This document shows, piece by piece, positions 3,521-39,118 of a stretch of DNA of 64,000 nt. Numbering within the stretch: position 1 is the first letter of the stretch; each line of letters begins with the position of its first letter. The notes beneath the pieces are model-generated. The model did not search any database and was not told where the DNA came from. It saw only the letters and a program-made list of their open reading frames with translations. The position numbers and the translations under genes are program-made. This DNA is from Oopsacas minuta. Taxonomy: Eukaryota > Animalia > Porifera. The DNA lies in contig JAKMXF010000335.1 in assembly GCA_024704765.1 (NCBI GenBank), forward strand, positions 124,001-188,000, read 5' to 3'.

Positions 3521-5017
3521 ATGGCTACAGACAAATGTAATTTCACGGAGAATACACTACTCTCCAATCCTATCCAAACTCTCCATTCCCTTGCTGATAC
3601 CAACACAGATATAGAATCTGTATTGAACAGCTACCAACGACTTATATCTCCATATACCAGTCGTATACCACTTCTAAACACATCAACTGATTATATGAAT
3701 AAACTTGTATACATACGTGGTATGATACAGAATATATCTGACCCAATACTCTACTCGTCAGCTGTTACACTGAAGCATAATACTACCTCAGAAACACGTA
3801 CTATCTATGTCATGTTCCTAGATAATTACACAGCACCTGATGGATGGAATATTCTAGAAACATCTGATATCAACCGAGCGAAACACGCAAGTGAATCTCT
3901 CCTCTTTCAATGTGTACCAGTACCAAATGAAACTGAATGGTGCAAACTTGAATGGTTGAAACAACAAAACGATTCCTCCACACAATTAAAACCATTACAA
4001 GTAATGGGATATACGAATCTATCCGCGATACTACTCAATAACGAATATCTATTATATGGTGTTATAATCGGAAATGAATCTACACAAACCCTACACTGTC
4101 TCTTTCATAAGCAAGTAACCATGGATACTCCATTACAACTGAGTAAATTCAATAACACGAAACCGTTGTTATTGAAAATACGTGAAAAACTATTATCACA
4201 ACTTTTGTTCTGTGTTTCTGGTGATAAACTGGCCGCGGAGTATATGCTATACAATCTCATATCGCGAAATTATGCACGCTGTGACGTCACACAACTTGGT
4301 AAATTTACACTTAACCTTATTCACTCATCACCAAACACTTCTCAACTAATATCCTATTTATATCCGAAGCTCTTACAACGGTTTTTATATCTCCCGCTCT
4401 CTCTTTCTTATCTCAATGAAAAACAGTTTCTTCCTAAAAAAGATTACACTAGTGAACACTTGATAACCGGATGTCTACAGCTAGTAGATTCTACGTTTGT
4501 ATTGATTGATGAGACTAGAATGGAGAATGGACGTTTGACTGCTTCAGGGGTAGCAGCACTTGCTGCCTTAGCTGAGCTCATCAATGGTCAATGTGTGTAT
4601 TATGATTTTACGTATCATAGACTGCCGTTCAATGTAGATGCGCCGATTCTAGTTGTAACTGAAGGTAACAAATCTTTGCTCCCTTCTAGCACTATTCTGC
4701 CTCTTATACCGTCAGATGACGTCATCACACGGCCTGAGTTATCTACAAGTGACCTTGAAGAATTGAGATTGTATATTACATCGGTTCGGACCATGGATTA
4801 CACACTTGATGTAGAGCTACAAGATAAAGTACAGGAGGATTGGGTTGATATGAGGAAGGAGGACAAGGAATTGACTGCTGACGATTTAACTAGACTTCTG
4901 ACAGCTGCGAGGTATTTGAGTATATCACGGGGAGATGGTAGCCTTATGAAGGAAACATGGATTGAGATTAATCAGTTAGAACGAGAGAGGAGAGCTAGGT
5001 TAAATTCTATGAAGTAA
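3521..5017 (+). CDS. MCMBP: Mini-chromosome maintenance complex-binding protein, intronless
   Basis: 498-aa ORF with recalled MCMBP motifs GDKLAAEYMLYNLIS, LGKFTLNL, PKKDYTSEHLITGCLQL, LIDETRMENGRL, YYDFTYH and W..MRKED...TADDL..LL..AR. Confidence 0.9.
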   Translation: MATDKCNFTENTLLSNPIQTLHSLADTNTDIESVLNSYQRLISPYTSRIPLLNTSTDYMNKLVYIRGMIQNISDPILYSSAVTLKHNTTSETRTIYVMFLDNYTAPDGWNILETSDINRAKHASESLLFQCVPVPNETEWCKLEWLKQQNDSSTQLKPLQVMGYTNLSAILLNNEYLLYGVIIGNESTQTLHCLFHKQVTMDTPLQLSKFNNTKPLLLKIREKLLSQLLFCVSGDKLAAEYMLYNLISRNYARCDVTQLGKFTLNLIHSSPNTSQLISYLYPKLLQRFLYLPLSLSYLNEKQFLPKKDYTSEHLITGCLQLVDSTFVLIDETRMENGRLTASGVAALAALAELINGQCVYYDFTYHRLPFNVDAPILVVTEGNKSLLPSSTILPLIPSDDVITRPELSTSDLEELRLYITSVRTMDYTLDVELQDKVQEDWVDMRKEDKELTADDLTRLLTAARYLSISRGDGSLMKETWIEINQLERERRARLNSMK

Positions 5018-5501: not shown

Positions 5502-7380
5502 ATGGAATCTACAGCAGATCATCCCTACCAAGAAATGCTAGATCTTCTCAATGAACAATTCAATAGAAACTCATCAGGTATGGCAGTTATCAGTGCTAAC
5601 AGTTCAATACATACCTACTCTGAGCTACAGGGTAATGCAGGTAAAATACGTGAACTTTTATTGCACATTGGTGTTGCTAGGCAACATGTTATTGGTATTT
5701 GTATTGAACAGAATTTTGATTATATATCAGCTGTTACCGGTGTGATGTTACACGGCAGTATATTCTTGAATTTAGACCAGTATATGAACCGGAACATTCT
5801 CACGAAATTGATTTCGGCACAGCCACCAGATGTACTAATTATCGACCAATATTTCCCTATAGAAATACTATCTGAAGTAGAAATTAGCTTCCCAATTATT
5901 TTCATTGAATCAATATTGTATGACTCAATTATTTCGGCGCCTAAACTTGTGATTAACACATCATCCAGTGAGTTTGATCGTGACGTCATGTACTTGGTAT
6001 ATACATCAGGTTCTACTGGTGGTTCAAATTGTGTTATGGGTAGTTACACTGCGCTTTTAAACAGATTCTGTTGGGAATGGCAACAGTTTCCCTTTTCTCC
6101 AGGTGACCTGCTTTGTTGCCAAACCTCCCCTGCTTTCACTGATTTCTTATGGACCTCCTTGGGTGGTTTACTTGTTGGTACACCCACTATTATCGTGCCA
6201 AAACCTCTTTACATGCGTATATCTCGTTTCATAGACATCTTATCGTCCCATTCAGTTAGCCATTTAGTGCTTGTTCCTAGTATTTTGAAGAAAATTAATA
6301 AAATCCTTGGTTCATCAGGTAAGCCATTGCCCTCTTTGAAATTCCTCGTTTCTACTGGTGAGATTCTATACGAATTTATTGCGAATGAATTCCTGAACTT
6401 TGTACCTAACTGTACTCTACTCAATTTCTACGGTTCAACTGAAGTGACTTCTGACGTCACATTCTATGTAGTACATTCAGATTGTATTAGTACAGCTGAT
6501 GAACATCAAAAGGTATCAATAGGAAGAGCAATAACAGGTGTAACATGTCATATTATTGATGATAAGTCTGATTGCGTTAAGGAGCCTTATGTAGTAGGAG
6601 AGCTAGTTGTAACTGGAGATTGTCTGTCACATGGTTATTATAAGAATCCTGAATTGACGAAACGTAAGTTTTGTCCTTTGTTCCTCTCACCGAGTGAGGG
6701 TGCTGTTGAAGGGCTCAGGACTGGGGATTTAGCGTCATGGCTGCCCAACGGTGATCTGGAGTTTGTAGGAAGGTTAGATGATCAGGTTAAGATATCAGGG
6801 TCACGATGTGATTTGAAAGAAATTGAGATTGTCATTAATAAAATAGCGTTCATAGATCGTGTTGTTGTGCGTGCGGTTAATTCACCCAAACAGGATCCAA
6901 CTTTAGTTGCATATGTTCAATTAGACCGCATTTCTACCCGATCAGTACCAAATGATCCCCCCTTCTGGAAAGATACGAACAGACAGAAACAAATTCATTC
7001 TTTAGTAGCTAAAACACTTCCCCCGTATATGACACCAACTATTTATATATTCGTTAAGGAATTTCAATTGTTGAATTCAGGCAAAGTTGATTCAAAATCT
7101 TTACCAGATCCTATGCTAAAGAATTGGGAAGTTGAAGCTACCACTTGTACACGTATTGATAATGACGTCATCGAATTTGTTAAAGGTTTATTTGCGAAAC
7201 ATTTATACTTAGAAATATCGGAGATTACTTTAAAGGATAATTTCATGGAGTTGGGGGGTTATTCTCTGCTAGTTATGTCGTTATTTGAGGATGTTGAAGC
7301 GAAGTATAATGTGTGTATGCCTGTGTTTGAATTTATAGAGGATTCGACTGTACAGAATTTGTGTGAATTTATACAAACAA
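5502..7380 (+). other. NRPS module 1: starter adenylation domain (Ebony/beta-alanine type) + carrier T1
   Basis: YTSGSTG (about 6000), AFTDFLW (6132), NFYGSTEVTSDV (6423), RTGD, GRLDDQVKISG and SGKVD. T1 motif LGGYS has its Ser at 7263-7265. No upstream C domain. Confidence 0.85.
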
Positions 7381-10300
7381 ACATGAAATGTCAACAACAA
7401 CAACAACAACAACAACATCAGGAAATGAATAATCAATTAACACTTGTATTGCCAGAAAATTTGCCGGAAAAAATACCATTTTCATTCGCTCAAAAGGAAT
7501 TATACTATTTACACGAGGCTGATAAGTCTAAATCTACATATAATGAATTCGTTGCAGTAGAAATAGAAGGATTAATAGAAGTACCATTGCTACAAACTGC
7601 TATTAACGATATAATTACTTCTCGTATGATTCTACGTACTACTTTCCATCTTGAAAAACAGGAATTTTACCAAAAAATACACACCGATTTGAATTATAAA
7701 TTACAAATATTACAAACATCCAACGCTCAATTGGACCAAGATATCATCAGGAATTTACAGCATGAATTCACCCTCGATCAATTACCTTTATTTCAATTCA
7801 CACTTTTCATATTATGCGATGCATCACGTCCAAAGAGTTTCTCCAAGCGTATAAAAGGTAAAATGATATTACTTCTCTCTTTACATCATCTCTTAGTTGA
7901 TGGACTGTCCCTATATAAAATACTGTTAGAGCTATTTACAATATACAACACATACTTAGACACATCAGCCAAACTCCCAGGGCAAAATCCACCTCAATAC
8001 ATTAGCTTTGTGTTATTAGAACGGTCAGATTGTCATCAGAAAGTATTCAAATCACAGTTAGAATATTGGCGTACACAGCTACACGCCATGGATATGTTAC
8101 ATATAAGATCTGATATGGAAGGGAGTTCTAAATTCGGTCCTGCTGGACAATTTATCTGTGGGATAAGTCTGGACACGAAACGGAAACTTACTGACGTCGC
8201 TCTCGCTCATAACACTTCTCTATTCACCACTCTAATCGCGGCATTCGCGTTCCTACTCTCAAAATACGCACAAGACCAAGATGACGTTACAATAGCCACA
8301 CCAATGAGCCTACGTCCTCATATACCTCAAGGAATGGAGCTGATAGGACCCTTAATTAACGTAGTATTAATCAGGACTAAATTCGGAATATTAAAACCTT
8401 TAACACAACACTCTTTCTCAGATTTATTAACCAAAATGCATGAAACAGTTAAACAAGCAATGCAGAACTCCCTTGTACCATTAGAACATGTAGCCAATAG
8501 TTTACGAATTGATACCCCAAATAATTCGCCGTTTGAAGATTTGTTACAGGCTCTGTTCGTATTTCATGAACACAGTAAGGTTCTTAAGCTAATTAGTAGT
8601 AATAATGATTATTCTATCAAGGAATATGGAGTATATCCTGAATTGAATATGCAAGCTAAAAGTAATATTGTAATGTCTATTGATATCGTAGAGGAAGGCT
8701 TACAGGCGAGATTAGCTTATCGTACTTCTCTGTTTAGTAAGAGTTTTGCTCGACAATTCTGCCAAGATTATGTACAGCTTCTACAATTCATTTCAAATCG
8801 TCCTACTTCTATATTATCCAGATTTTCTCTACTTTCCAACCAGGAGTATAAGAATATTATTTCGATTTGTTCTACTCCGAATTTACCAATAACTACTACA
8901 TCAATTCCTCAAATATTCTATAAATGGGTTCAAGATACACCCAATAACATTGCCCTGGAAATAGAGGATCGATTATACACATATTCACACCTTTACGAGT
9001 TAATTACACTCATTGTACAATCTCTTACAGAACCTCCCCATCAACATGGTTGTGTCATTGGAATTTGTATGCGGCAGTCTGTTAACCTCGTAGCTAGCAT
9101 CCTCGCGGCTTTATTCGCAGGTTTTGGCTATGTATATTTAGACCCAGATCTCCCAAAAGGTAGATTAACCTACATACAACAAGATGCTAACATTTCTACT
9201 GTACTATTAGACTCCAGCATTGAATTAAGCTTGATAACTTCTAACCAAATAATCAACATAGATATTATACTGAACAGTGAATTTAATGCTGAGTATAATT
9301 GTCCTATGTCTGGTAACGAAATCTGCTATATATTATACACATCAGGTAGTACAGGTAGGCCTAAAGGAGTAATAGTTGGTCAGATTAACGTGATAACAAG
9401 ATGCTGCTTAACTCCTGAACTAATTGGGCCGCCAGCAGCTAGATATTGCCAGTTCTCGACATTCAGTTTTGATATATACGCGTATGAGTTTTATTGTGCG
9501 TTGCTTAACGGTGCAACTCTATGTATATTCGAGCGAGTCAAATACTTAGCTCAACTCGATCTATTCACTTCTCTTCTCCACCGTCAATACATTGACTGTA
9601 TGATGCTTGCTCCACCATTATGTGACGTCATATCTAAAAACTATCCACGTGCATTTTCCTCACTATACTCCCTCATGGTTTCAGGTGATATCCTACAACC
9701 TATCGTATCGAATAGGATATTAACCCAAGGGGCACCGAAAAACTTCTATAATCTCCATGGAATAACTGAAGTTACTGTAGTAGATAGTATTTATCGATTG
9801 GATGATTTGTTCTACAGTGATATTCCTATAGGCAGACCACTGACTAATAATTCTATGTTTGTTGTAGATAAACATATGAATTTGTTACCGAAAGGGATTG
9901 TTGGTGAGATATTAGTTGGAGGGGGAACAGTCGCATTGGGGTATTTAAATAATTCTGAAAAGACTAAGGATAAATTTGTTACTTTTCGTTTCAGTCAGGA
10001 TTCGACTACGAGATTATTCAAATCAGGTGATTTGGGATATTTGGATTTTTCGGATAGATTCAGGTTTATTGGTAGAAGTGATTGGCAGATAAAACTACGT
10101 GGACAGAGGCTGGAATTAGGAGAAATTGAGCGTGTAGCACTTGAGTATCCAGGTGTTAATGAATTTGCTGCTGTATGTAGAATAGAAGGTAATATACCAG
10201 TTTCTATCATAGGATTCTGTTCTACAAATATTGTGAATAATAATGCGCTAACACAAGAACTAAATTTACATTTGAGAGATACACTAGCTCCCTATATGAT

Positions 10301-13300
10301 CCCTAGTGAGATTTATTTCTTGAATGAAATGCCTTATGGTACTACAGGGAAAATTGACCGTCAAAAGTTAATGAAATTGGTTGAAGAAGTGGAAATATCT
10401 AGCGAGAAAGTACCCAGCAAAAACGCCGTTACTTCGACAAATATTGATATTTTTGCAACCTTAAAGACAATTTTTACACAATATTTTCCCGAAATTGAAA
10501 TATCGATAAATTCAGATTTCTTCAATATTGGAGGTAATTCTATAACTGCTTTACAACTTGTGTCACAGATTAACTCAGAATTACAATTATCAATTTCTCT
10601 ACGTGAATTCTTTCAGCACTCAACCGTTGCTAAGCTGGCCAAGTTTATTACTGATAAATATAATTTTGTGGTTCAAGTCGAGAATGAAAACTACAGCGAA
10701 AATATACGATCTGACTTGTCAATGAATGAAATTTCAAAACGACTTACGAAGAAGTTTCCTAATCTTTCGAATTCTAACTTAGAAACTGAATTACTTAATA
10801 CAGAAATTTCCAGCAAGATTATTGAAGGAATTAACACGCTTTTTTGCTTGAAACTACTCAGTAAAGACTTGCGAAATATACTTACATTTGATAATCTCTG
10901 TTCTTTGATTGTAGAACAACTCAATTTTCAAGAAATTCCTTCAGAAAATCCAGAGGTTTATCCACTAGCCTCGACGCAGCGACAATTCGCATTAGCATAT
11001 GTCTTAAACCAATCAGAATCCGCATACCACATTCCATTGTGTATCTATAGCAACCAACTAGAATGGGATATTGTAACAGAGTTTTTCAATAGTTTTATAC
11101 AGAATCACAGTATATTACGTACTGTATACACATTATCTACTGGATTCTCACAAAAACTAATCTCTAATCCAATTTTCCCTTTTCAAATATTGAAATTCAC
11201 TTTACCACCCGAATACATTGAAAATCCATTAGAATATAATCAACTTAAAAACCTTATTAAATCTGAGGTAAATTCGCCTCTTGACATACAGAATTCTATC
11301 CCTCTAAGAGCAACATTTGTGGATATAAATACAGAAAATTCTCCTGTTAAAAAGTCCCTAATTATTCTAATTCTCCATCATATTGCAGCTGATGGTTGGT
11401 CTGTGAATCTTTTATTAGAAGAATTCCAAAATTTCATCAAAACTTACCCAAAATACAAGCTGAAAAATACGAATTTCTTACAATTAACTTCAAACGATGA
11501 CACTTCATATATAGAGTATTGGAAAAATAATTTATCAAAGTTTATTTGTAACGAATTGAAATCCTTTATGCTTCTATCTAACCGTTCGAATTCTACATTA
11601 GAAAAGCCCGATATATACAAGTATATTGTAGAAATCGATATAGCCAAGAAAATACAGAAAACAAGTCAAATATGTGGTGTTACTCCGTTTATAACATTTT
11701 TGTCCGCTTTTGTTTATTTGTTTACTTTTCTATATGAACCGTCATTACAAATTGTTGTCCTTACACCTGTATCAACACGATCAACTTTAGTTGATAAACA
11801 ATATTTTGGACCAAGCGTTAACCTTCTTCCAATAGCTATAGACCTAGAAAGCAAGGACCTAGCTAGAGAATTCTCATTCAATGATTTGACTAAATTCATT
11901 CAAAATATATTTCATACCGCTTTAGAAAATTCACCAATTACATATGAGGAAATTCACCCATTTTTAAACAAGAGTTCCTCTAACAACACAAAAGTACCTG
12001 TGGTATTCAGTTATGATTCGAATCAGCTACAAACTTCACTTGACCTTGGGAAATATGGAAAAGCACAAGTCTTACCTGCATTTGATTATCTACCGACACT
12101 TCTACATGATATCTTAATAGAAGTTAATTACACTGGTGTACTAATTGAGCAAACATTGACTATAAGTCAAGCTGGAATACAACCAGAAAAATCAAAGAAT
12201 ATTCTCACACAGTATAATATATTGTTGGAATCGGTTTGTGATTCGTTCGACACTCCCCTTTATAAACTCACAGCTCTCCCTGATGTGTATGCAAAGGCTC
12301 TGACAGGTGCCAAATGCCCATCTGAGTATATCAATATTGTCATTCTAGTATACAAAATTTGTATGGAAAATCCTGATGATATTGCATTCGAATTTGACAA
12401 TGAACATTTAACATACAAACAATTCTTCGCGGAATGTTATACATATGCTATTGACCTACGTAAGTCACTTCCCAACCCTTCAAATACTATTATAGCGATT
12501 ATAATGGATCTTTCTATTGAATTAATATTAGCCATGATTTCAGTGCTAATCATTGATTTTACTTATATTTTGATTGATCCAATACTCCCTATAAATCGCA
12601 TACAAGCAATGCTGGAATTTACTGAGACAATTGCGATTATAACTACAAACAAATACAAAACTTTTTGTGAAGAAATCAACTCTAAATCTCGATTCATTTC
12701 CGTTTTAGACAGGGAAACGTTAACATGCATTGATGTACCATACAGTCATGATTTTCATTTGACGAATGAAACTGCCTATGTCATGTCTACTTCCGGTTCA
12801 ACAGGTGAACCGAGATACGTCACAATACCACATTCCTCAATCCTATCTCGTATCCATGTAAAATCCCTCCCATTCTACTCACCTACCCAAACAGTATTAA
12901 TCTGCTCAAGTCTCTCATTCGATATTTTACCATTACAAATATATGGATCGATTTTCAGTGCATCGAAAGGTGTAATTATCCATCAAAATTGTCTGGGAAT
13001 TAATATAGATAAACTCAAACCAACTGTAATAGAAAAAAATATTAATCATATGACATTACCCACTCCAGTTCTTCACCTGGTTATTGAGATAATGCCTGAG
13101 ATATTTGAACATGTGAAATATATAGATTTTGGTGGAGATGTCGCTAGCCCTGATATTTTATGTAAGCTCCAAAAAATGTATCCCAAACTGCTTTTAACTA
13201 ATTCTTATGGTCCCACAGAAGCAACTATAGTTTGTTCAAGTTCAATTCTAACTCTGCAAGATTGTCTCAAACCTATTTTAACGATTGGCAGTGCTGTACC

Positions 13301-16300
13301 TAATACAGATCTGTTGATTGTAGATACATATATGCGTAGTGTTCCATTTGGTATACCTGGAGAATTGTTGATAACTGGTGGGGTTATGTCCGGGTATCTT
13401 CATAGGCCAAATGATGAGCGATTGGTTTCAATAGAAAACGCATTAGGTAATGTTAATGTGTATTTTCGTACAGGCGATAAAGTTCAGCAGAGAGAGGATG
13501 GGAAATTGGAGTTTTTGGGTAGAAATGATTTTCAAGTTAAATTGGATGGACAACGTGTTGAGCTTAGTGAGATAGAACATGCTCTTATGAAGCATAAAGA
13601 TGTACAACTAGCTATTGTGTTTGTGAAAAAACGCGAAAAATCGAATGTTAAAATACTGCTCGCTTGTATTCTTTGTGAAAATGTCATCACTAGGGAGTCT
13701 ATGGAAATTCATGCTAAGAAATATTTGACTACGGTTATGGTGCCTTCCCAATTTTATTTTTTCAAAACATTTCCACTTTCAATAAATGGCAAAGTTGATA
13801 GAACAAAACTTTTCGAGAAAATTCAATTTGAAAAAGATTCCAAAAAGCCTGAAAGCATTCAAACTACTAATTTTGTGAGTCAAAATTTATTAGAAGAAAT
13901 TTGTCAATGTTGGAAGCAAGTTCTTGGTTTGGATGAAATACCATTGACACAATCATTTCACACGCTAGGAGGTACATCTCTCTTATTAGTACAATTACAT
14001 TATAAACTACAGCAAAAATTCGAAGTTAATCTAAGCCTACCTGAAATATTAACAAACAACACTGTATGGCTACAATCTAACTGGATAGCTAGTAAATCTC
14101 GTGATGACGTCACGGAGGTCCCCATGGATAAAACAGAATTAATTTTACCGAGGGAAGTAACAGAGAATGCTAGATATCCTCAATTAGCTGTTATTGGTAT
14201 GGCTTGTAGATTTCCTATGAGTGAGGATAAAGAATCGTTTCATGATACTCTCTTACAGGGGAAAGATTGTATAGACATGCAACAAGCTGGTGAGTAATTA
14301 TTATATTATAGTATACAATACAGTCAAACGAATTCCTAGTCCAATACAAATGAACCTCCACAAACGAAGAATTTGGTAGAATCGGGGAAACAGCATTTAT
14401 CTGCTTCTCTGGCACCCCGTTTATGGAGGTTACACTGTAGTTATAAATAGAATGTCTGTGCAAAATGAATTTAGAAATACAAGTTTTTGTGCTTTAGTTT
14501 CTACTGATATTTGTTCAAAATTCTATTATTAACGAAGTTCTACTGTATCTTACAATTGCCCCGAACCATTAATTACCATTCTTAAACTCATAATTATATA
14601 CTTACTATTACAAATTAATAATAATATCATTAGAAGATGGCTATATTGCAGCAGGAGGTTGTCTATCAAATCCAGAGCTATTTGATGCTGATTACTTTGA
14701 CATTACTCGGTTTGATGCTTGTCTTATGGATCCTCAATACAGACTGCTTCTAGAGCTAGCAGTAGATGTTATAAGAGATGCTGCTATATCACTGGAGAAG
14801 GAGAAAGTTGGAGTTTTTATTGGTTAGCTAATATGAATATTCTCTGATTAATATATATGATAAATTTACGATAATTGTTTTCAACGGCTATCACGCTCGT
14901 AATTGATTAGTTTAGTGCCTCTTTTAACCGTTATCTCTTATCAACATTTTGATCCTATCCGTTAAATTCATGTGTTTGGCCGTCTCTTCATTAAACAATA
15001 TACAGGCAACTCCCGAAATACCGGTTAATATCGAAGCAGATCGAAGTCTATACACATATGGAACCAAACAGTCAAAAACACAAATTTAATCGGGTTATAT
15101 CGAAGTTATGATCTCGGTCCCTTGAGATATATGTATGTAATTTAGGTTGTGCTACTAACACCTATCTATCAGCATCAGGAGTAGATCTATCCTCTTACCA
15201 CTACGATCCAGCTGTATCCTTCCATGTGGGTAGAGTACTGTCAGAGGAATCAGCTGCTAATTTTATATCATATCACCTCAACTTAACAGGACCTTCCTTA
15301 CTAGTTAAGACTACTTGTGTATCATCTCTTACTGCAATGCATCTAGCTGCACACTCACTACACACAGGAGAGTGTACTGCAGCTATAGTGGGTGGTGTTG
15401 ATATATCATTTCCACAGATTAGTACTGTTAGAATACAGCAGGATATGATATTCTCTCCAACAGGTAGGGGCAAAACATAATTGCTTAGTTTAGGCATACT
15501 AAACTTGGCAATTATGTTTTGGCAAGTGACGTTATAGACAAATTTATTGTATGTTTATACACCAAAAATAGCAATTAGGTGACGTACTACTATAGACTCT
15601 TGATATCGAATATATAATTGCCAGATAATCTGGCTCAGCTGTTCCCATCCATATACCCCTTGGGCCTTGGTGGCCCACATATGACAGCAGGGGATCCACA
15701 GGATCTAAAATTTATATTGCACTTATGTAAGGGGGTCGACAAAATGTGTTTAAATTAGTATAGGGGTCCGATGGTTGGAACCGCTGATCTAGCCAAAATC
15801 TCATTCCTGTAGGTCACTGCAAGTCATTCGATGATACAGCAGATGGTCTCGTGTCCGGTAACGGTATAGGATTACAAGTAATAACACTCCTACATAATGC
15901 ACTATCTAACGGCTATCCAATATACTGTAAGGTAACTGCTAGCTCTATGAATAACGATGGTAATAGCAAAGACACGTATTTCTCTCCTAGTCTATACAAT
16001 CTAACTGACTGTATAAAACACTGTATTAACCTAGACACAGAGGGGTATATAGCTTCAATAGAAGCTCATGGAGCTGGTACAATGGTAGGAGATCAGATTG
16101 AATTAGAAGCACTTCATCGTGCTTATTCTAAAAATAGTAACAGTGAAATTCATATTAATTTAGGATCTGTTAAATCTAATATTGGTCATCTCGGGTATGC
16201 TTCTGGTGCTGCTGCTTTGTGTAAGTCAATTTTACAGTTGGAAAAAGGCGTTTTATATCCGAGTCTGCATTTCAGCGATTGGAATGGGAGTTATATAAAG

Positions 16301-19300
16301 AATCATGGAAATATTCCGTTTCGCGTGGCTTCTAAAGTTGAACCATGGACTGGGAGGAGGAGATCAGCTGTTAACGGTATGGGACAGGGTGGTACCAATG
16401 TGCATATTATCCTAGAGGAACATATACATACACCTTATATACCTCGTGACGTAGTTCGTTCAGATAATGGTTTTATTTGTCCTATATCTGCTCATAGTGA
16501 TGTTGTATTGAAATGCGTATGTAGGGAGTTGATGGGATTAATTGAGAGACGGAGTAACGTGGGATTACCCAGTTTAATATCATCTTTATATAACACAACT
16601 CGTAATCTTTCTTTTAGAAAATGTTTTGTTTCACCAAATCAATTCGATCTTTTAAGCCAACTCAAACAATGGGATTCAACGCAACAGATTATGGCGCATT
16701 CCAAAGACCCTAGCAACCTGGTTCTAATTTTTGCCGGGCAAGGCGCGCATTTTCCTAACATGGGACTTGGCTTGTATTTAGACTCACAAATATTTAGGTC
16801 ACATTTTGATAATGCCGTTTCTATTTGTCGTTCTGAGTTAAAATTCGATTTACTCAATTTATTATTTTCAGCGAATCCCAATACAAATCCTACACATCTT
16901 CAAGTTTATACAGTTTGTTTACAAGTTTGTTTGTATCGTCTTATGACGTCAATAGATATTGACCCAGTTGTCCTTATAGGACATAGTATAGGGGAAATAT
17001 CTGTAGCTACTTGTTGTAATGTATTTACATTGGAAGATGCTATACAGCTTGTGTACTACAGGAGCAGGTTAATGCTTGGGGCTACTGATATGAAATATGG
17101 AATGTTGGCCGTCAAAACCGATCAAATTTCCGCGAGGAAATTAGCTACAGAGTCTGGCCTCTCTATCGCTGCGTTTAACAGCCCAAATCAAACAGTATTA
17201 TCCGGTGAGATGGTCATAATATCTTCACTATGCGAGCAATTAACAAAACAATCAATTCAGTATAAAGTGTTATCAGTTCCTACAGCTTATCATTCGAAGC
17301 TATTAACAAGCATATTACCACAGTATAGAAATCTGTTGAAGAAATATCCACCACATGCCCCATCCAAACAATACATTTCTACTGTAACAGGTAATTGGGT
17401 AGATATCAATACTGTATCTACTGTTTCTTATTGGGAAGACCAATTGGTCAATTCTGTATTATTCTACCCTGCATTAGAATGCGCCGCACAAATAGCGAAT
17501 CCAGTTTTCTTAGAAATCGGCCCTGGAAGCAGATTATCTTCAATTATTAGGAATCATATGCTAGGATATCATGTATTTCCACCACTTATAACTTCTAATG
17601 ATAATTACCTTGAAACTTTTAAGGAAATTTGGGAGTTTGGGTTCGAATTAAAATGGAGCTTATTTGGATTTTTTGAAGATTCCACACCGAAAATTCGTAT
17701 TTTTCCTTTTCCGTTTGAAAGAAAGAAATTCTCCGTACAAGATATTAAAAAAATTCTTAAACCGAACGTTGAAATTTTACAGCCAAAACAGACATTCACA
17801 TTGCCACTACTAACTAATACAATTCCAGAATTTTCATTGAAAACTATCGATCAACAGCTCTCTGCTCCAATTGTACAACTAATAAAGAATGTATCTTCTA
17901 AAGTTATTGAAGGAGAGCACAAAAACTTTAATATTACTGTTGGATTGGGTTTACCTGGTGGTAGCACTGTATTCGAATCTTTGACAAATTTTCCGACGTC
18001 TAGTACTACAATATATCCTATTGGCTGTCTATCCAGTATATTTATATACATTCTTTTCAATATCTTCCTGACAACTGGTAGAGTCACGCATAGCACTAAG
18101 CTTATCGAATTGCTACCGTTAGAATATTCAATTTCTGAGCCGAAATCTTCTATAACTCTTTTCCATCTCGCAACACACTCATCAGGCCTAGCTTTCCTTC
18201 CTTCACGACTTACATGGGAAGTTTCTGATCTCTCCAATTACTCGCTTTCAGAGCTATTTACAGATTTCGTAGAATGTGAGCTACAGTCATCGCCAGGTGA
18301 TCAGTACAGCTATTCTGTATTTGGGTCTGCGCTACTTACGCATGCACTAACTGCTATTACAGAGCAATCCTATGAGGAATTATTACAATCTTATATACTA
18401 CAGCCTTTAGAAATGAAATCTACGTTTATTAGTGCATCTATTCGGACGCTAAAGTTCAAACATTATCAGGGGCATGACGTCAAAGGTTCTAAGGTCCCTA
18501 AATGGAACTGTGGAGAAGCTTTTAAGTTTGCTGATGGGGTTCATAGTACATTAAAAGATCTCATAAGTTTAACCCAGTATTTGACTGGAATTGCAACTTG
18601 CGATGTTCCATTGAAAGGCGTATTGGATTTTATGATAAAATCCGATCAGAATTCGTATAGTTTTCTATCTGGCATAACTAACGGGAGTTCAGTTTGGCTA
18701 GCTGTTGATTTGAAATGGAAAACATCGATTATTCTGGCTTGCAATACAAGTCTTGATAATTGTAAAAAGTTAGCTAAATTGACTGAATTTACTTTCAACA
18801 CATTTCCTGGACTATACACTAGTTTGTATTCAAGTAATATTATAGGTGGTAGCCAATCAATTCCTATGTCCTTTGGTGAAAAACAGATACTTGCATTAGG
18901 TGGTGGATCTATGCCAGCAATTAATGCTCCGATAAATGCTCTCGCTATGTGCGATAGAAGTCAAGAAATTGAGTGTCCTGCTCCCGGCAATAACTATCTT
19001 GTTAATGGAGGAATAGGGGAGATACTGCCGAAAAATGAAGTATCAGATGTTGAAAAAGTTATTTTAGAGGCACTGTCTAATCTTGTTGGAGGTGACGTCA
19101 TAAAAAGGCAAGATGTATTAAATTTGGATTTCACACATTTGGGCCTTGATTCTCTTTTAGCCATTTCTCTGGCAGAGCAAATTTCTAATGTTTTTAACAG
19201 AAAAATATCTTTTCATCTTCTTTCTGAATACACAACAATACATGAGCTTTCTCAGTTTATACAGGCAGATTGGGAAAATCTTGCAAAACACATTCCAAAC

Positions 19301-20676
19301 GTCCATAGCAACACACATGATGCAGACACTAATCACATACTATCTATTCCTAATACAAATATATACGAATTATTTCCAGATAGTACATTTCCATTGGTTA
19401 TAGAACCTGCTAGTGAACAGTACAATGGCATCGTTAATCTTAAGAGAATATTCTCGAAGCATTCTGAAACATTCCAATCTCTGTTGCTAGGCAGCGGTGC
19501 TCTGTTATTCAGGAATTTCAAACTTGATACAGCTGAGCATTTCTCAGAATTTACGAATGAGTTGAGTGGAGTTTTTGGTCCATCTCTTGAATATTTAGAT
19601 GGTATTTCACCTAGAACACGAGTGCTAGAAAAGATATACACTTCTACTGAGTACCCGTCTAAGTACGATATGTCTCCACATAATGAGATGTCCTATTCCC
19701 CTAATCCACCTTCTCATATAATGTTCTTTTGTCTAAATCCTCCTAACAACGATTGTGGAGGACAAACACCTTTGATGAGTTCTAGAAATATTCTGGACAA
19801 GATTCCAGAGAAATTGTTGAAAGATTGGAAAACTCGGAGTTTGAAATATTATTGGAATCTGTCTAGTCGTGGTAAAGGAGCTGGTAAGAGTTGGCAAGAT
19901 ACATATGGGACTGAGGATAGGCGGTGTGTGGAGAAGTTTCTCGCTGAACAAGGGTTTGAGTTCAAATGGAAAGGAAGTACACTTCGAACTTCTAGGTAGA
20001 TTTAATACAGAGATAGCATTTAGTATCATAGAGTACAGTCAATTCCCGTTATATCGAAGCTCAAGGGTCCCGCGATAATTATTTCGATATAACCGTGAAA
20101 TGTATGTCTCTTTTACGGTTGGGGACCATATTTGTACAATTTAGACTTGGATATAACAGGAGTTGACTGTATGTCCCATCACAATATGAATCTCTATCCA
20201 TTGTATGTATTAACTAGAGTAATTTTAATTTATAGCCAATTTATGGGATTGATAAATTAAATGTATTATCCCGTGTATCAAGTTAACAGTTTTCTACTAA
20301 ACAAAATATCCATACAATGATTGATTACTTATTTAGAACTGCAACAATAACACGATGCCACCCGATCACTAAAGAAGAGGTTTGGTTCAACCACGCTCTC
20401 CTATTCCACCCCTCTGAACTACCCGACACAGTCAGCACTTCCCTCTCTTCATTCCCTAAAGATGAATACCCCAAGCACTGTACTTATGGAAACGGAGAGG
20501 AAATATCAGATTCAGATATAGCTCAGGTTAAATCTGTCTGTTTATCAAATTTGGTAATGTTCGATTGGCAGAAAGGTGATGTATTGTTGGTTGATAATTT
20601 CTTAGTTGCTCATGCAAGGAAAAAATTTTCTGGTGAGAGAAAGATTCTTGTCTCCATGTTCCGTTGTCAAGATTGA
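5502..20676 (+). CDS. Spliced hybrid NRPS-PKS megasynthase, about 4,605 aa: A-T-C-A-T-(T*)-C-A-T-KS-AT-betaLac-ACP-TauD. Exons 5502-14289, 14634-14822, 15146-15463, 15813-19995, 20337-20676
   Basis: Four GT-AG introns (donors GTGAGT, GTTAGC, GTAGGG, GTAGAT; phases 1,1,1,2) join the exons in frame. 8788+189+318+4183+340 = 13,818 nt = 4,606 codons including the stop. Splicing restores a continuous KS (DPQYRLLLE, TTCVSS, HCKSFDDTADG, EAHG, KSNIGH) and a continuous TauD domain. Confidence 0.9.
7392..7415 (+). repeat. (CAA)8 microsatellite encoding poly-Q in the T1-C1 linker
   Basis: Eight perfect CAA codons; protein reads MKCQQQQQQQQHQEM. Confidence 0.95.
7470..10660 (+). other. NRPS module 2: C1-A2-T2
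   Basis: C1 active site HHLLVDG (7884-7904). A2 motifs YTSGSTGRPKGV (9336), FKSGDLG, GRSDWQIKLRGQRLELGEIE and TGKIDR. T2 motif IGGNS has its Ser at 10539-10541. Confidence 0.88.
10955..14095 (+). other. NRPS module 3: C2-A3-T3
   Basis: C2 active site HHIAADG (11376-11396). A3 motifs STSGSTGEPR, NSYGPTEAT, FRTGD, GRNDFQVKLDGQRVELSEIE and NGKVDR. T3 motif LGGTS has its Ser at 13977-13979. Confidence 0.88.
14321..14437. mobile_element. Degenerate TA-flanked MITE in NRPS-PKS intron 1
   Basis: TA|CAGT...ACTG|TA ends. AACCTCCACAAACG (14353-14366) is inverted relative to CGTTTATGGAGGTT (14418-14431). A similar right end lies at 28060-28079. Confidence 0.55.
14634..14822 (+). CDS. Exon 2 of the NRPS-PKS (KS domain); absent from the ORF track
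   Basis: TAG acceptor at 14631-14633 and G|GTTAG donor at 14823. Translates (E)DGYIAAGGCLSNPELFDADYFDITRFDACLMDPQYRLLLELAVDVIRDAAISLEKEKVGVFI(G), containing the KS motifs FDAxFF and MDPQxRLLLE. Confidence 0.92.
17870..18810 (+). other. Serine beta-lactamase/AmpC-fold domain embedded in the PKS module; catalytic motifs altered
   Basis: YPIGCLSSIF aligns with F.IGSxxK.F; LATHSSGL with LLTHTSGL; PGDQYSYSV with PG..Y.YSN; YEELLQSYILQPLEMKST and ADGVHSTLKDL with AGGL.ST..DL. Confidence 0.8.
19040..19280 (+). other. PKS acyl carrier protein (ACP)
   Basis: FTHLGLDSLLAISL (Ser at 19151-19153) followed by ...HLLSEYTTIHELSQFI. Confidence 0.88.
19370..20676 (+). other. C-terminal TauD/SyrP-like Fe(II)/2-oxoglutarate dioxygenase domain (split by intron 19996-20336)
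   Basis: GALLFRNF, IYTSTEYP...PHNEMSY (HxE at 19679-19687), FFC..P...GGQTP, WFNHA and WQKGDVLLVDNFLVAHAR (distal His at 20611-20613). Confidence 0.88.
20036..20169. mobile_element. Tc1/mariner(pogo)-type MITE, family A, in NRPS-PKS intron 4
   Basis: TIRs CAGTCAATTCCCGTTATATC / CAGTCAACTCCTGTTATATC (18/20) with TA on both sides. Related copies at about 15003-15130, 28573-28735, 30767-30944 and 50020-50170. Confidence 0.85.
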
Positions 20677-21438: not shown

Positions 21439-23562
21439 ATGTCATTGATCATGAATAACTCAGAAAATTTCGTACATTCCCTGACTACTTCATGTGCAGA
21501 CTGCAGTTTCCCTCAGGTTAACTGGATTAGTATCAACAAAGGGGTCTACCTCTGTGACGACTGTTGCTCTATTCACCGTAGTCTAGGCAGACATTTATCA
21601 TATGTACGGTCTATTGAAAAACAACGTTGGCCTGATGGGCTATTACAAATGTGTATGTCTCTGTTGCAAAAGAATTCTAATAGTATTTGGGAACACGATT
21701 TATATCATTCAAAGCAGCCCACACAACAACAGAAATTCAATACCCTTACGAAACACCCACACTTCAATACTTTATCTTTACAAAATAAACCCCGAAAACC
21801 GCAACCACAAGATCCACAGACCCCAGTAAAGGAGGCCTACATCAAAAGCAAGTACCAGGATCTAGCTTATACTCAGAAACTGAACTCAGGTAAAGATTCT
21901 CCTACAGGCACTGTGGAAGATTTCAGTCAACAGCTACACGCATCTGCTCGTACAAATAATCTTGAAACATGCTTGAGATTGTTAGCTTTAGGAGCTCAGC
22001 CTTCCTACCTGCACCCGCATAGGGGATCATCTCCTCTCCATGTAGCAGGACAAGCTGGACAGGTGGAACTATGTGAACTGTTGTTCGTGTACGGAGCTGA
22101 TCCATGTTCACTTGATAAGCTAGGTCATACTCCCGAGGAATGCGCTCGTATTGCAGGACACCATAATCTAGCTGATAGACTATTAGAAATGCAGTATGAA
22201 TGTAGTGATAGGTTGAGTTATTATCTGAACGATATGTTACCAGATCATAAATCAGGAGAGCATTTTATCGTGCCGGAAATGTTCAGATGCTCTGAGGATG
22301 AACTTCTACTACGGAGTCCTAGACAGAAATTACGTACTTTGAATAATTCAGCTTATGAGGATCTTTGCCAGGATGTTTTTGATGAAATTGATCGTCGTGA
22401 AACTGAAAATGCATGGTTGTTACGTAGCAGAGGTGGTGGAATTCCATTCTTACCGAATAATCACGAATTGAACCATCTCCGTAATCAAAGTCGTCAAAAA
22501 CTTGGGTTGCTAAGCGAGGAGGAATTCCGGCGTTTTGTATCCGACATTCTTTTGGACGCAAAGCGTCGTCAAGATCTAAGTATTGATCTCGGTCCTAATT
22601 CCCAATCTGGCGGTACGTTAGTGCCTCTATCAGATAGTTATAATCCATTAATTCCACAACCAAATAATGAATATGATATTGTACCAGAGGAATTTAGACA
22701 AATGACGATGAAAGGTAGTGACATTACAAATGATGAAAGGGAGAATTCTCTGGACACCATGGAAACCACGCTTCTACCAAATTGTGTGACTCCATCTGAT
22801 CCTGACTACTCTGTGCTTAATAATGAGCAGTTACAAAGATTGGAGAGTTGTTATCAACAGTGTCAATCGCAGGTATCAGCTGTTGAACTTAATGTAAGTG
22901 AACTACAAGATTCTGTGAAGCGAATTGAAGCTAAACTCGATCAGTTGATTACTCAATCTCTCTCGTCACCTACATTAGCTTCCCCGCCAGTGCCCGCACA
23001 TGCAAATAGAAATAAAAAGAATGATTCTACAGTGATTAGCATAACAAGCAGACTAAATCAACATTCAAATCCTAATCAAAGACATACACTAATGGATTCA
23101 TCTACTACGTCAAGACAAGAAATACCTCCTAAACCGAAAAGAAACACGGCTTGTATAGGTACAAACGATAAACTAATTGAGGGTCAATTTGAACCAGATG
23201 AAGGAGTTCTAATGAATCTTATCTCTAAGCTTGTAGAACAGATATCAATGCTGATGGAGAGTATACGTTCTAACCAATATGACCAGATTGTAATACGAGT
23301 TAACGCTATTATAGGTTTATCACAGGATATGATACAGGTATTTCCGGAAAATTATGAATCTACAAATGTATCACAGTTGGTAGGAAAGCTCCGTAGCTCT
23401 ACAATGCTTCTATCGTCCATTTCGTTAGTAGGAACTGTTGAAGAACCTCTTGATACCAATAAATTGATTTCCCTAGTTATTGACGTGTCAAATTCCGCGA
23501 AACGAATGGTTGCTGTTCTGGCTGATAAATCTAATATAGGTCGTGTTGTGTCCTCTGTTTAG
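21439..23562 (+). CDS. GIT: ARF GTPase-activating protein GIT1/2 homolog, intronless
   Basis: ArfGAP zinc finger CADC...CDDCCSIHRSLGRH; ankyrin repeats (PLHVAGQAGQ...LFVYGADP); two Spa2-homology repeats (DVFDEIDRRE; RNQSRQKL..L...EF); a coiled coil; and a C-terminal helical region like the paxillin-binding domain. Confidence 0.93.
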   Translation: MSLIMNNSENFVHSLTTSCADCSFPQVNWISINKGVYLCDDCCSIHRSLGRHLSYVRSIEKQRWPDGLLQMCMSLLQKNSNSIWEHDLYHSKQPTQQQKFNTLTKHPHFNTLSLQNKPRKPQPQDPQTPVKEAYIKSKYQDLAYTQKLNSGKDSPTGTVEDFSQQLHASARTNNLETCLRLLALGAQPSYLHPHRGSSPLHVAGQAGQVELCELLFVYGADPCSLDKLGHTPEECARIAGHHNLADRLLEMQYECSDRLSYYLNDMLPDHKSGEHFIVPEMFRCSEDELLLRSPRQKLRTLNNSAYEDLCQDVFDEIDRRETENAWLLRSRGGGIPFLPNNHELNHLRNQSRQKLGLLSEEEFRRFVSDILLDAKRRQDLSIDLGPNSQSGGTLVPLSDSYNPLIPQPNNEYDIVPEEFRQMTMKGSDITNDERENSLDTMETTLLPNCVTPSDPDYSVLNNEQLQRLESCYQQCQSQVSAVELNVSELQDSVKRIEAKLDQLITQSLSSPTLASPPVPAHANRNKKNDSTVISITSRLNQHSNPNQRHTLMDSSTTSRQEIPPKPKRNTACIGTNDKLIEGQFEPDEGVLMNLISKLVEQISMLMESIRSNQYDQIVIRVNAIIGLSQDMIQVFPENYESTNVSQLVGKLRSSTMLLSSISLVGTVEEPLDTNKLISLVIDVSNSAKRMVAVLADKSNIGRVVSSV

Positions 23563-38101: not shown

Positions 38102-39118
38102 TTAGAAATTGAATTGTAGTAATCTAAAGAATGACCGTGAAGCTCGTTTCAACCATTTGGGTCGATGCATGAATGTTTTTCTTAATTTTCTATGTCGTTT
38201 TGTGCTCGATTCTAGTGTGGAACTTGGTGATGATAAAACTGAACTTTCACATTGGCTAGAACTAATCGTGAAGAAGGAACGGTCCTCTGATTTTTGAGAT
38301 GTAGGACTGAACATGAAGGATGGATCTGTATCATTGCTTTCACTACCCGACCATACTGATAGATTTGTAGAATCTGAGTCACTATAGTTTTCGTCGATCA
38401 TTTCAAGTGTGGTCTCATCAATTTTCGTAGACAGTGAAAGGGATAGAGGCTTGGATTTAAGTTCTGCTTCATATTCGAATAATTGCCCCATGAACCCAAA
38501 ATTGGGCGATACCCATTTGCGACAGGATCGGACATATTCGAGTGCACCATCCATACTTCTACCTTCAGTTAGCATCAGGTAGGCTATACAGATGGTTGCT
38601 GATCGAGATATACCAGCTTGGCAATGCACCAATAATTTACGTCCTGATTCGCGTACATTATTGATGAAGGCGAATGATTCTTGGAAAATGCATGTGATAT
38701 CGGAATCACCTGTATCACGGACTGGCAAATGTTTGTATTCATATTGTGACTCGTCTATGTCTGGGTATCTGTTGGACACGTTTAAGATTGCCTCAATTCC
38801 ATATTTGTTCAACCATTCTATATTTGTTGCGTGGTATTCCGAACCGAGATATAGGAATGGTAGAATTTGTGCTGGGCCGACTGTTCGATCGTACTGAATA
38901 CTATCATAACGATCACGACATTCGAAATCAAATGTTTGGTTATTTACTGGAATTTCCACATTGAACGAGTGACTTCTTTTTGCACTGTATTCTTTGTTGT
39001 AATCAACGGAAGTCTGAGTTGGTGTTGATGGCATTGACAATGTTAAATGCATTGGCCTCATTCTCCTTCGGAGCATTAGTGAGGAGGAATTTAATTCCAT
39101 TGATATTTCGATGGACAT
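38102..39118 (-). CDS. Dual-specificity MAP kinase phosphatase (DUSP1/4/5-like catalytic domain)
   Basis: GPAQILPFLYLGSEYHA, VHCQAGISRSATICIAYLM and VSPNFGFMGQL; Ser-rich C-terminal tail; no rhodanese domain in the ORF. Confidence 0.92.
   Translation of the reverse strand: MSIEISMELNSSSLMLRRRMRPMHLTLSMPSTPTQTSVDYNKEYSAKRSHSFNVEIPVNNQTFDFECRDRYDSIQYDRTVGPAQILPFLYLGSEYHATNIEWLNKYGIEAILNVSNRYPDIDESQYEYKHLPVRDTGDSDITCIFQESFAFINNVRESGRKLLVHCQAGISRSATICIAYLMLTEGRSMDGALEYVRSCRKWVSPNFGFMGQLFEYEAELKSKPLSLSLSTKIDETTLEMIDENYSDSDSTNLSVWSGSESNDTDPSFMFSPTSQKSEDRSFFTISSSQCESSVLSSPSSTLESSTKRHRKLRKTFMHRPKWLKRASRSFFRLLQFNF

Follow-up and report, generated by a model that had tools for sequence, protein, structure and literature searches.

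How does an assembly line that makes a peptide-polyketide release its chain when it carries none of the recognized release domains? To our knowledge known release devices are few, namely the thioesterase (TE) domain, the reductase (R) domain, a terminal condensation (C) domain and the trans-acting TE of the penicillin-binding protein (PBP) type, and the offloading chemistry determines the product of the assembly line. The question is raised by a stretch of 64,000 nucleotides, here called the window, from the glass sponge Oopsacas minuta (contig JAKMXF010000335.1, positions 124,001 to 188,000 of the forward strand), in which a hybrid non-ribosomal peptide synthetase (NRPS)/type I polyketide synthase (PKS) gene is found; glass sponges are, as far as we know, a group in which hardly any biosynthetic genes have been recognized. 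Between the acyltransferase (AT) domain and the acyl carrier protein (ACP), this gene encodes a complete and selectively maintained β-lactamase fold of the AmpH/class C type, fused in cis, in which the nucleophilic serine has been replaced by cysteine. The reading tentatively favoured here, which falls just short of being called probable, is that this inserted domain (X) uses its Cys for acyl transfer or release at the neighbouring ACP, its catalysis being predicted.

The domain between AT and ACP

The host gene corresponds to GenBank entry KAI6647928.1 (P0158 in the comparisons below), a protein of 4604 amino acids that served as the full-length sequence, is 100% identical to the window across the domain and is annotated only as ‘hybrid NRPS/type I PKS’. 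Its full layout is A-T-C-A-T-C-A-T-KS-AT-X-ACP-TauD, where A, T and KS are adenylation, thiolation and ketosynthase domains and X is the β-lactamase fold, and it includes a single PKS module. The domain is encoded within an exon at 15851-19999 on the + strand, which runs uninterrupted for 1382 codons and contains the region 17870-18810 in frame. Along this exon the order of Pfam matches is the C-terminal half of KS, the KS-AT linker, AT, PF00144, PP-binding and the N-terminal part of TauD; by residues of the open reading frame (ORF), AT occupies 292-568, the β-lactamase fold 660-994 and the ACP 1090-1137, with TauD next (Pfam). Neither a Thioesterase nor an NAD_binding_4 (R) domain was found by Pfam in the Oopsacas exons or in the database protein. 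An earlier note, made from the letters of the window alone, had placed a β-lactamase-fold domain with Cys as its nucleophile in this slot of a megasynthase without TE or R, and each of these points was borne out. The domain is delimited as follows.

17828..18832, + strand: complete AmpH/class C-type β-lactamase (PBP) fold, from the N-terminal to the C-terminal helix (Pfam, AlphaFold, Foldseek, VIA)

Several lines of evidence define the fold, which spans residues 28-362 of a 384-residue query (window 17747-18900). PF00144 matches ORF residues 715-909 with an E-value of 4e-19 and 69.4 bits against a cutoff of 27 (Pfam), and this sequence score, together with a two-domain architecture of one α/β and one all-α part, places the domain in the PF00144 superfamily. 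The AlphaFold model, built from an alignment of 117 sequences, reached a pLDDT of 88.7 and a pTM of 0.88. It had been set beforehand as a check that the predicted structure should be a β-lactamase fold, and Foldseek matched the model to class C β-lactamases with TM scores of 0.67-0.73. The VIA structural search, which does not depend on Foldseek, likewise returned a class C β-lactamase as the best match (Z 33.4, 301 residues aligned, rmsd 2.3), followed by ClbP (7ul6, 30.1), BmmI (6kjh, 29.9), LACTB (29.5), the R61 DD-peptidase (29.1), SurE (6ksu, 28.9), LovD (4lcl, 25.9) and Ulm16 (8fek, 25.7); computed on a model, these Z scores do not separate the SurE, LovD, ClbP and class C families. The equivalog cutoffs of NCBIfam for class C/AmpH were missed by a wide distance (NF033085, 51.1 against 415 bits; NF007943, 48.9 against 266 bits). 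Judged by sequence, the ancestor of the domain is an AmpH-like, bacterial-type DD-peptidase/hydrolase and not the animal LACTB. The fold ends at ORF residue 994, and the roughly 75 residues that separate it from the ACP are poorly conserved (identity 0.49) and of low pLDDT where modelled.

A remodelled active site

Four segments of the domain depart from the canonical active site.

18020..18037, + strand: I-G-C-L-S-S in place of S-x-x-K; the Cys (C94) is TGT at 18026-18028, and a Ser at 18035-18037 replaces the catalytic Lys (alignment to AmpC-type chains, codon)
18311..18319, + strand: Y-S-V at the site of Y-x-N; Tyr189 is retained, with Val instead of Asn (alignment to AmpC-type chains)
18503..18535, + strand: W253-x-C255-G256 ... 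A-D263-G; C255 is TGT at 18509-18511 and D263 is GAT at 18533-18535 (alignment to AmpC-type 2qz6)
18665..18673, + strand: L-S-G in place of the K-T-G/H-x-G box, of which Gly alone is kept (comparison with stand-alone relatives)

When the domain was aligned with AmpC-type structures using HMMER, ‘ypigCLSSif’ was placed over ‘felgSISKIF’ or ‘feigSVSKTF’ and ‘YSV’ over ‘YSN’, so that in AmpC numbering Ser64 has become Cys, Lys67 has become Ser, Tyr150 is retained and Asn152 has become Val. The Cys is thus aligned to the catalytic Ser64, and in the AlphaFold model C94 stands at the N-terminus of helix 93-109, which is the canonical position of the nucleophile; the Cys therefore lies where the earlier note had expected it. 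None of the three boxes that are canonical for PF00144 (S-x-x-K, Y-x-N and K-T-G/H-x-G) is present, their places being taken by C-L-S-S, Y-S-V and L-S-G. The first two of these substitutions, with the Tyr kept, and the conserved LxTHxSGL and PG..Y.YS motifs (here LATHSSGL and PG..YSYS) had been reported in that note and were recovered in the translation and alignments, and the loss of the third box is a change beyond it.

Further residues have changed around the pocket. The segment from W253 to D263 aligns to AmpC omega-loop positions 211-221, with C255 at 213, G256 at 214 and D263 at Tyr221, whilst S315 and W317 fall on strand β3, just past the oxyanion-hole residue in the AmpC alignment. Among the nine residues that characterize the family described below (C94, S97, C255, G256, D263, S315, W317, L342 and E347), seven lie on segments that, from general knowledge of AmpC, we take to build the active-site cleft of class C enzymes.

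Conservation in sponges and beyond

Six sequences from other assemblies (P0001-P0006) share both the exon and the architecture with Oopsacas, with 61-74% identity, and because of this identity and the shared end of the exon they are presumably orthologs from other glass sponges (hexactinellids). The IGCLSS motif is invariant in all seven sponge-type sequences, which are 61-76% identical. Selection was estimated by the Nei-Gojobori method over four pairs as the ratio of non-synonymous to synonymous substitution (dN/dS), which was 0.10-0.15 for the β-lactamase-fold domain, 0.08-0.12 for KS, 0.09-0.16 for AT, 0.11-0.18 for ACP and 0.07-0.13 for TauD, with the linkers at 0.09-0.38 (0.2-0.38 in most comparisons). 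Amino acid identity gives a similar picture, at 0.72 for the core of the domain, 0.73 for KS and 0.64 for both AT and ACP. That the domain is a relic in decay was considered and rejected, its dN/dS being like that of KS, AT and TauD.

To reach deeper relatives, 1.8 billion representatives were scanned exhaustively with HMMER, which gave 7327 relatives, the best 150 of which were compared. Nearly all of these 150 are stand-alone hydrolases of around 350-500 residues. A minority are megasynthases or fragments of megasynthases, namely P0012 (4922 residues), P0044 (4670), P0021 (4327), P0015/P0156 and P0030, and a further one, P0157 (4640 residues), was added by a word-based search; beyond it, searching with the full-length sequence brought in nothing but the Oopsacas protein. 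P0012 and P0044 scan as A-T-C-A-T-C-A-T-KS-AT-PF00144-ACP-TauD and the precomputed domain list of P0157 agrees, so that with P0158 of Oopsacas there are four full-length members with a common layout; two fragments, P0015 and P0030, end in PF00144-ACP-TauD as well. No TE, R or extra C domain was found in any scanned member of the family, full-length or fragment. P0021, which lies on a contig of 16 kb, has no TauD in Pfam and may be truncated, and P0156 (5786 residues) exceeds the other members by about 1100 residues and may contain one module more. Two PF00144 domains in tandem occur in P0007 and P0008, which score best among the stand-alone relatives.

The embedded domains differ from the stand-alone relatives in a consistent manner. 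Those of the six members that are not of sponge type are only 25-30% identical to the sponge domain, and all of them carry (G/A)-C-(L/I)-S-(S/G). At the position of C94 (Ser64), Cys is present in 12 of 12 embedded domains, or 13 of 13 with P0157 included (seven sponge-type and six distant), so that the site, which the earlier note had suggested comparing among orthologs, never varies in orthologs or deep relatives; the stand-alone relatives have Ser in 101 of 105 and Cys in none, a difference that exceeds chance. The position of S97 (Lys67) holds Ser or Gly when embedded and Lys in 100 of the 105 stand-alone proteins. Tyr189 (Tyr150) is invariant in the embedded domains and present in 104/105 of the others; V191 (Asn152) is replaced by Pro, Ile or Asn in some embedded members, with Asn in 96/105 stand-alone relatives; and at L307 (Lys315) Leu, Ser, Phe, Asn and Tyr all occur in embedded domains, with His (86/105) or Lys (7/105) in the stand-alone proteins. 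In addition C255, G256, D263, S315, W317, L342 and E347 are invariant across the six embedded lineages and rare or absent elsewhere, where the first three positions are occupied by F/L/I, by P/G/D and by G (93%), respectively. The codon for the nucleophile-position Cys is TGT in most members and TGC in P0015.

In a maximum-likelihood tree the 13 embedded domains form one clade (SH-aLRT 100), within which branches exceed one substitution per site, in a quick search that included many rows of biased composition as well as the trait columns themselves. Among the best 79 bacterial or archaeal loci, all 73 matches that bear the motif have Ser...Lys and none has Cys; these are canonical SxxK hydrolases of 24-37% identity. 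P0012, P0044 and P0015 lie among eukaryotic genes whose introns are very short, and these neighbours include the genes for RCC1, a NOX-type reductase, a PRP40-like WW/FF protein, RasGAP, XRN and OST5. The distant members themselves are intronless ORFs of 4.6-4.9 thousand residues on AT-rich eukaryotic contigs (L002, GC 0.26; L082, GC 0.35; L083, GC 0.38), and the introns of the neighbouring genes on those contigs measure no more than a few tens of bases. Among the neighbouring genes of the loci compared, which differ from locus to locus, there is no obvious release enzyme. A single episode of remodelling, in the ancestor from which this eukaryotic family of megasynthases descends, replaced Ser by Cys, Lys by Ser, Asn by Val and His/Lys by Leu in the active site and left the Tyr in place; pocket-forming segments acquired a second Cys together with an Asp, a Ser and a Trp, and the site was frozen afterwards.

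What the domain may do

For Cys-dependent acyl transfer or release, the following course is proposed. The thiol of C94, at the N-terminus of the nucleophile helix and beside the backbone oxyanion hole, would accept, through thioester exchange, the finished β-ketoacyl-peptidyl chain carried on the phosphopantetheine arm of the neighbouring ACP. The retained Tyr189, possibly with D263, would then activate the incoming nucleophile, for which water, an external acceptor and an internal amine or enol are candidates, and the chain would be released or passed on by cyclisation, hydrolysis or transfer to the acceptor. In this manner the domain would supply the step of offloading or transacylation to an assembly line in which TE, R and terminal C domains are all absent. 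Loss of the Lys could be tolerated because thioester exchange, being near isoenergetic, should need far less help from a general base than the acylation of Ser does, and a thiol placed in this way would be well suited to it. There is precedent for parts of this scheme: the β-lactamase-fold enzymes SurE and LovD take acyl groups from carrier-protein thioesters, and TE domains of the α/β fold in which Cys stands for Ser exist in ObiF and SulM.

The earlier note had offered two readings of the Cys, an in-line transacylase or release domain and a scaffold. The catalytic one is favoured here because purifying selection on the domain is strong, because new residues on the pocket segments are conserved together with the Cys, and because TE and R are lacking across the family; the scaffold survives beside it, given that every classical partner except the Tyr has been lost. 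That loss (the equivalents of Lys67, Asn152 and Lys/His315), for which no replacement base such as a His was identified, is the first of several points that weigh against catalysis. The residue at the His/Lys315 equivalent varies among the embedded domains. The AlphaFold model was computed from an alignment made up mostly of canonical Ser enzymes, and supports the fold, not the geometry of the altered site. The stretch of the gene was present in no RNA run searched. Release may instead be performed in trans by an unlinked enzyme, and the position between AT and ACP also houses non-catalytic structural domains in fatty acid synthases (FAS) and PKS enzymes.

It is on these same losses, on the variable 315-equivalent position and on the slot shared with the structural domains of other megasynthases that the strongest competing explanation draws. 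Under it X would be a non-catalytic module, either a structural spacer or dimerisation element like the pseudo-ketoreductase and pseudo-methyltransferase of FAS, or a pocket that binds the chain or a ligand, and the Cys would be kept for packing at the buried N-terminus of its helix. Purifying selection does not speak against this, since a load-bearing scaffold would likewise show it. Pseudoenzymes, however, usually drift at the nucleophile, and here the Cys is fixed in 13 of 13 domains over branches of more than one substitution per site; the clade-specific residues cluster on segments that form the active site and not on a surface patch, and the core is constrained like that of KS. A non-catalytic role is accordingly considered rather unlikely, though it is the alternative to be taken most seriously.

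That two Cys and an Asp arose together, and that none of them varies in any of the six lineages, could also be taken to indicate some other thiol chemistry on the ACP-bound β-keto intermediate, with release taking place elsewhere or spontaneously. C94 and C255 might form an acid-base pair, as in an epimerase or isomerase, or a redox-active dithiol, the two Cys and the Asp might form a metal site, or a Michael-type addition might occur. Such a role would suit a domain that has had its classical acyl-enzyme machinery largely dismantled and that sits in the slot of the chain-processing dehydratase, ketoreductase and enoylreductase domains. C255, however, aligns to omega-loop position 213 of AmpC, which we take to be around 10 Å or more from Ser64 in class C enzymes; no precedent is known for such chemistry in the β-lactamase fold, and the family would still be without a release function. 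This explanation is thought improbable.

An artefact, whether contaminating bacterial DNA, an insert that is mis-assembled or in decay, or a Cys codon misread in sequencing, is suggested by little but the bacterial nature of the nearest stand-alone relatives, which are AmpH-like hydrolases, and can be dismissed as extremely improbable, given that the domain lies in frame in a single exon between AT and ACP of an intron-containing gene that stands between animal genes, that the same exon occurs in six other assemblies with a dN/dS of about 0.1 and a Cys codon identical or synonymous in all, and that the DNA is found in four runs of one sample. A bacterial contaminant in particular was rejected on gene context (the MCMBP and GIT1-like flanks and the introns).

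Relation to known systems

The earlier note had compared the domain with SurE-type TEs, LovD and ClbP. The comparison stands as an analogy of fold; membership fails because the defining residues and the architecture differ, so that the Oopsacas domain is not a member of the SurE, LovD or ClbP family and its likeness to them is a broad analogy only.

The PBP-type TEs (SurE, PenA and Ulm16) share the β-lactamase/PBP fold. They serve assembly lines without a TE domain by taking the chain from the carrier-protein thioester, and those of the SurE family are stand-alone enzymes acting in trans (PMC11735501). In contrast, the Oopsacas domain lies in cis between AT and ACP, inside one exon; at the positions equivalent to the tetrad of the SurE family it has Cys, Leu, Val and Ser, so that all four are changed, and the C-terminal lipocalin-like β-barrel of that family has no counterpart, the fold being followed before the ACP by the poorly conserved stretch of about 75 residues. 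LovD and the macrolactin BmmI-type acyltransferases, which acylate an acceptor using an ACP or thioester as donor, again share the fold, but are stand-alone Ser-Lys-Tyr enzymes, whereas the Oopsacas domain has Cys, lacks the Lys and is fused in line, and does not belong with LovD.

The AmpH/class C DD-peptidases are the best matches in Pfam, in NCBIfam and in both sequence and structural comparison with the PDB, and they have LxTHxSGL, PG..YS and Tyr150 in common with the domain. The latter differs in having lost SxxK, the Asn of YxN and KTG/HxG, and in being non-secreted, inside a cytosolic megasynthase. ClbP-type prodrug peptidases have the same fold, and ClbP too belongs to an NRPS-PKS pathway; it is a separate, periplasmic, membrane-anchored Ser-Lys-Tyr peptidase that acts after export, and none of these features applies to the Oopsacas domain. 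The Cys-type TE domains of NRPSs (ObiF and SulM) provide a parallel of another kind, as the nucleophile of a Ser-hydrolase is there naturally a Cys within a release domain, which offers an analogy for the preference for a thiol. These TEs have the α/β-hydrolase fold, stand at the C-terminus and keep a His base; the Oopsacas domain, by contrast, has a β-lactamase fold and no His partner was identified in it.

The gene and its Pfam content are already in public databases. A literature search of incomplete coverage returned no description of the domain, of a PF00144 domain in cis within a PKS module, of a natural Cys nucleophile in this fold or of the sponge gene, and the Oopsacas genome paper makes no mention of the gene (PMC10280926). 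It is conceivable, and put forward with more reserve than the favoured function itself, that X is the first natural thiol-dependent enzyme of the PBP/β-lactamase fold and the first instance of this fold working in cis within a PKS module, forming a self-contained device for release, cyclisation or transacylation that frees a peptide-polyketide without TE, R or terminal C domain and is conserved from glass sponges to other eukaryotes. If so, a Cys-based β-lactamase-fold domain acting in cis would be an additional release device, and it would follow that the Ser-Lys-Tyr machinery of a very large superfamily is open to rebuilding with a thiol at its centre. Should the domain prove non-catalytic, it would still be a clear example of a megasynthase that has recruited an enzyme fold as its scaffold. 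The host gene is among the few multimodular NRPS-PKS genes that are clearly of an animal nucleus, as seen from its introns and its MCMBP and GIT1-like flanks, and with relatives in other eukaryotes it points to an unexplored animal-made peptide-polyketide.

The host gene and its surroundings

The remaining features of the gene are as follows.

5502..14297, + strand: exon 1, which holds the NRPS part A-T-C-A-T-C-A-T and where KS begins (Pfam AMP-binding three times, Condensation twice, PP-binding three times, N-terminus of ketoacyl-synt)
14726-14827 and 15226-15480, + strand: small exons with the rest of KS, including the active-site Cys (‘TTCVSSL’) (ORF fragments)
15923..16273, + strand: C-terminal half of KS (PF02801, E 8e-26)
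16724..17554, + strand: AT domain, with the Ser of GHSIGE at 16985-16987 (PF00698, E 4e-40)
17702..17731, + strand: FPFPFERKKF, which from general knowledge of PKSs we take to be a post-AT linker motif, immediately 5' of the inserted domain (read from the translation)
19118..19261, + strand: ACP, with the phosphopantetheine Ser of LGLDSLL at 19151-19153 (PF00550, E 1.6e-8)
19448..19999, + strand: N-terminal part of a TauD/TfdA-type Fe(II)/2-oxoglutarate dioxygenase, with the H-N-E motif at 19679-19687 (PF02668, E 4e-18)
20317..20676, + strand: last exon, C-terminal part of TauD (PF02668, E 4e-15, profile positions 170-265)

The module has the hallmarks of a modular type I PKS, with TTCVSSL, EAHGAGT and NIGHLG in KS, GHSIGE in AT and LGLDSLL in ACP alongside Pfam matches to KS, AT and PP-binding. 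The first exon measures 8.8 kb, and a run of eight Gln follows the first T domain of this NRPS exon (5502-14297, +), near ORF residue 640. In the terminal TauD both the H-N-E motif and the second His are present; its nearest solved relative is the uncharacterised, clavaminate-synthase-like At3g21360 of Arabidopsis (1y0z, E 4e-29), which gives no guide to the chemistry, and the SyrP/TauD-type enzymes of known function are not the closest. The gene is represented in GenBank by two isoform entries, KAI6647928.1 and KAI6647929.1, whose lengths differ by one residue.

The neighbours of the gene in the window include a D-glutamate cyclase homolog, the MCM-binding protein (MCMBP) and a GIT1-like ArfGAP. 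As an intron-containing gene flanked by animal genes (MCMBP and GIT1-like), the NRPS-PKS gene is nuclear and animal.

879-2672, - strand: D-glutamate cyclase homolog, its N- and C-terminal domains both in a single ORF of 597 residues, two genes upstream of the NRPS-PKS (PF07286, E 5e-54; PF14336, E 6e-63)
3521-5017, + strand: MCM-binding protein, its C-terminal two thirds in one ORF of 498 residues (ORF)
21439-23562, + strand: GIT1-like ArfGAP-ankyrin-SHD protein of 707 residues in one uninterrupted ORF (ORF)
38102-39118, - strand: ORF of 338 residues with a dual-specificity phosphatase domain (PF00782, E 1e-38)

The proximity of the D-glutamate cyclase to the NRPS-PKS gene could be a coincidence or could be linked to D-amino-acid metabolism. 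From about 24 kb to the end of the window at 64 kb there are only two ORFs of at least 120 residues. The long ORFs of the GIT1-like and MCM-binding proteins both reflect the low intron density of the Oopsacas genome.

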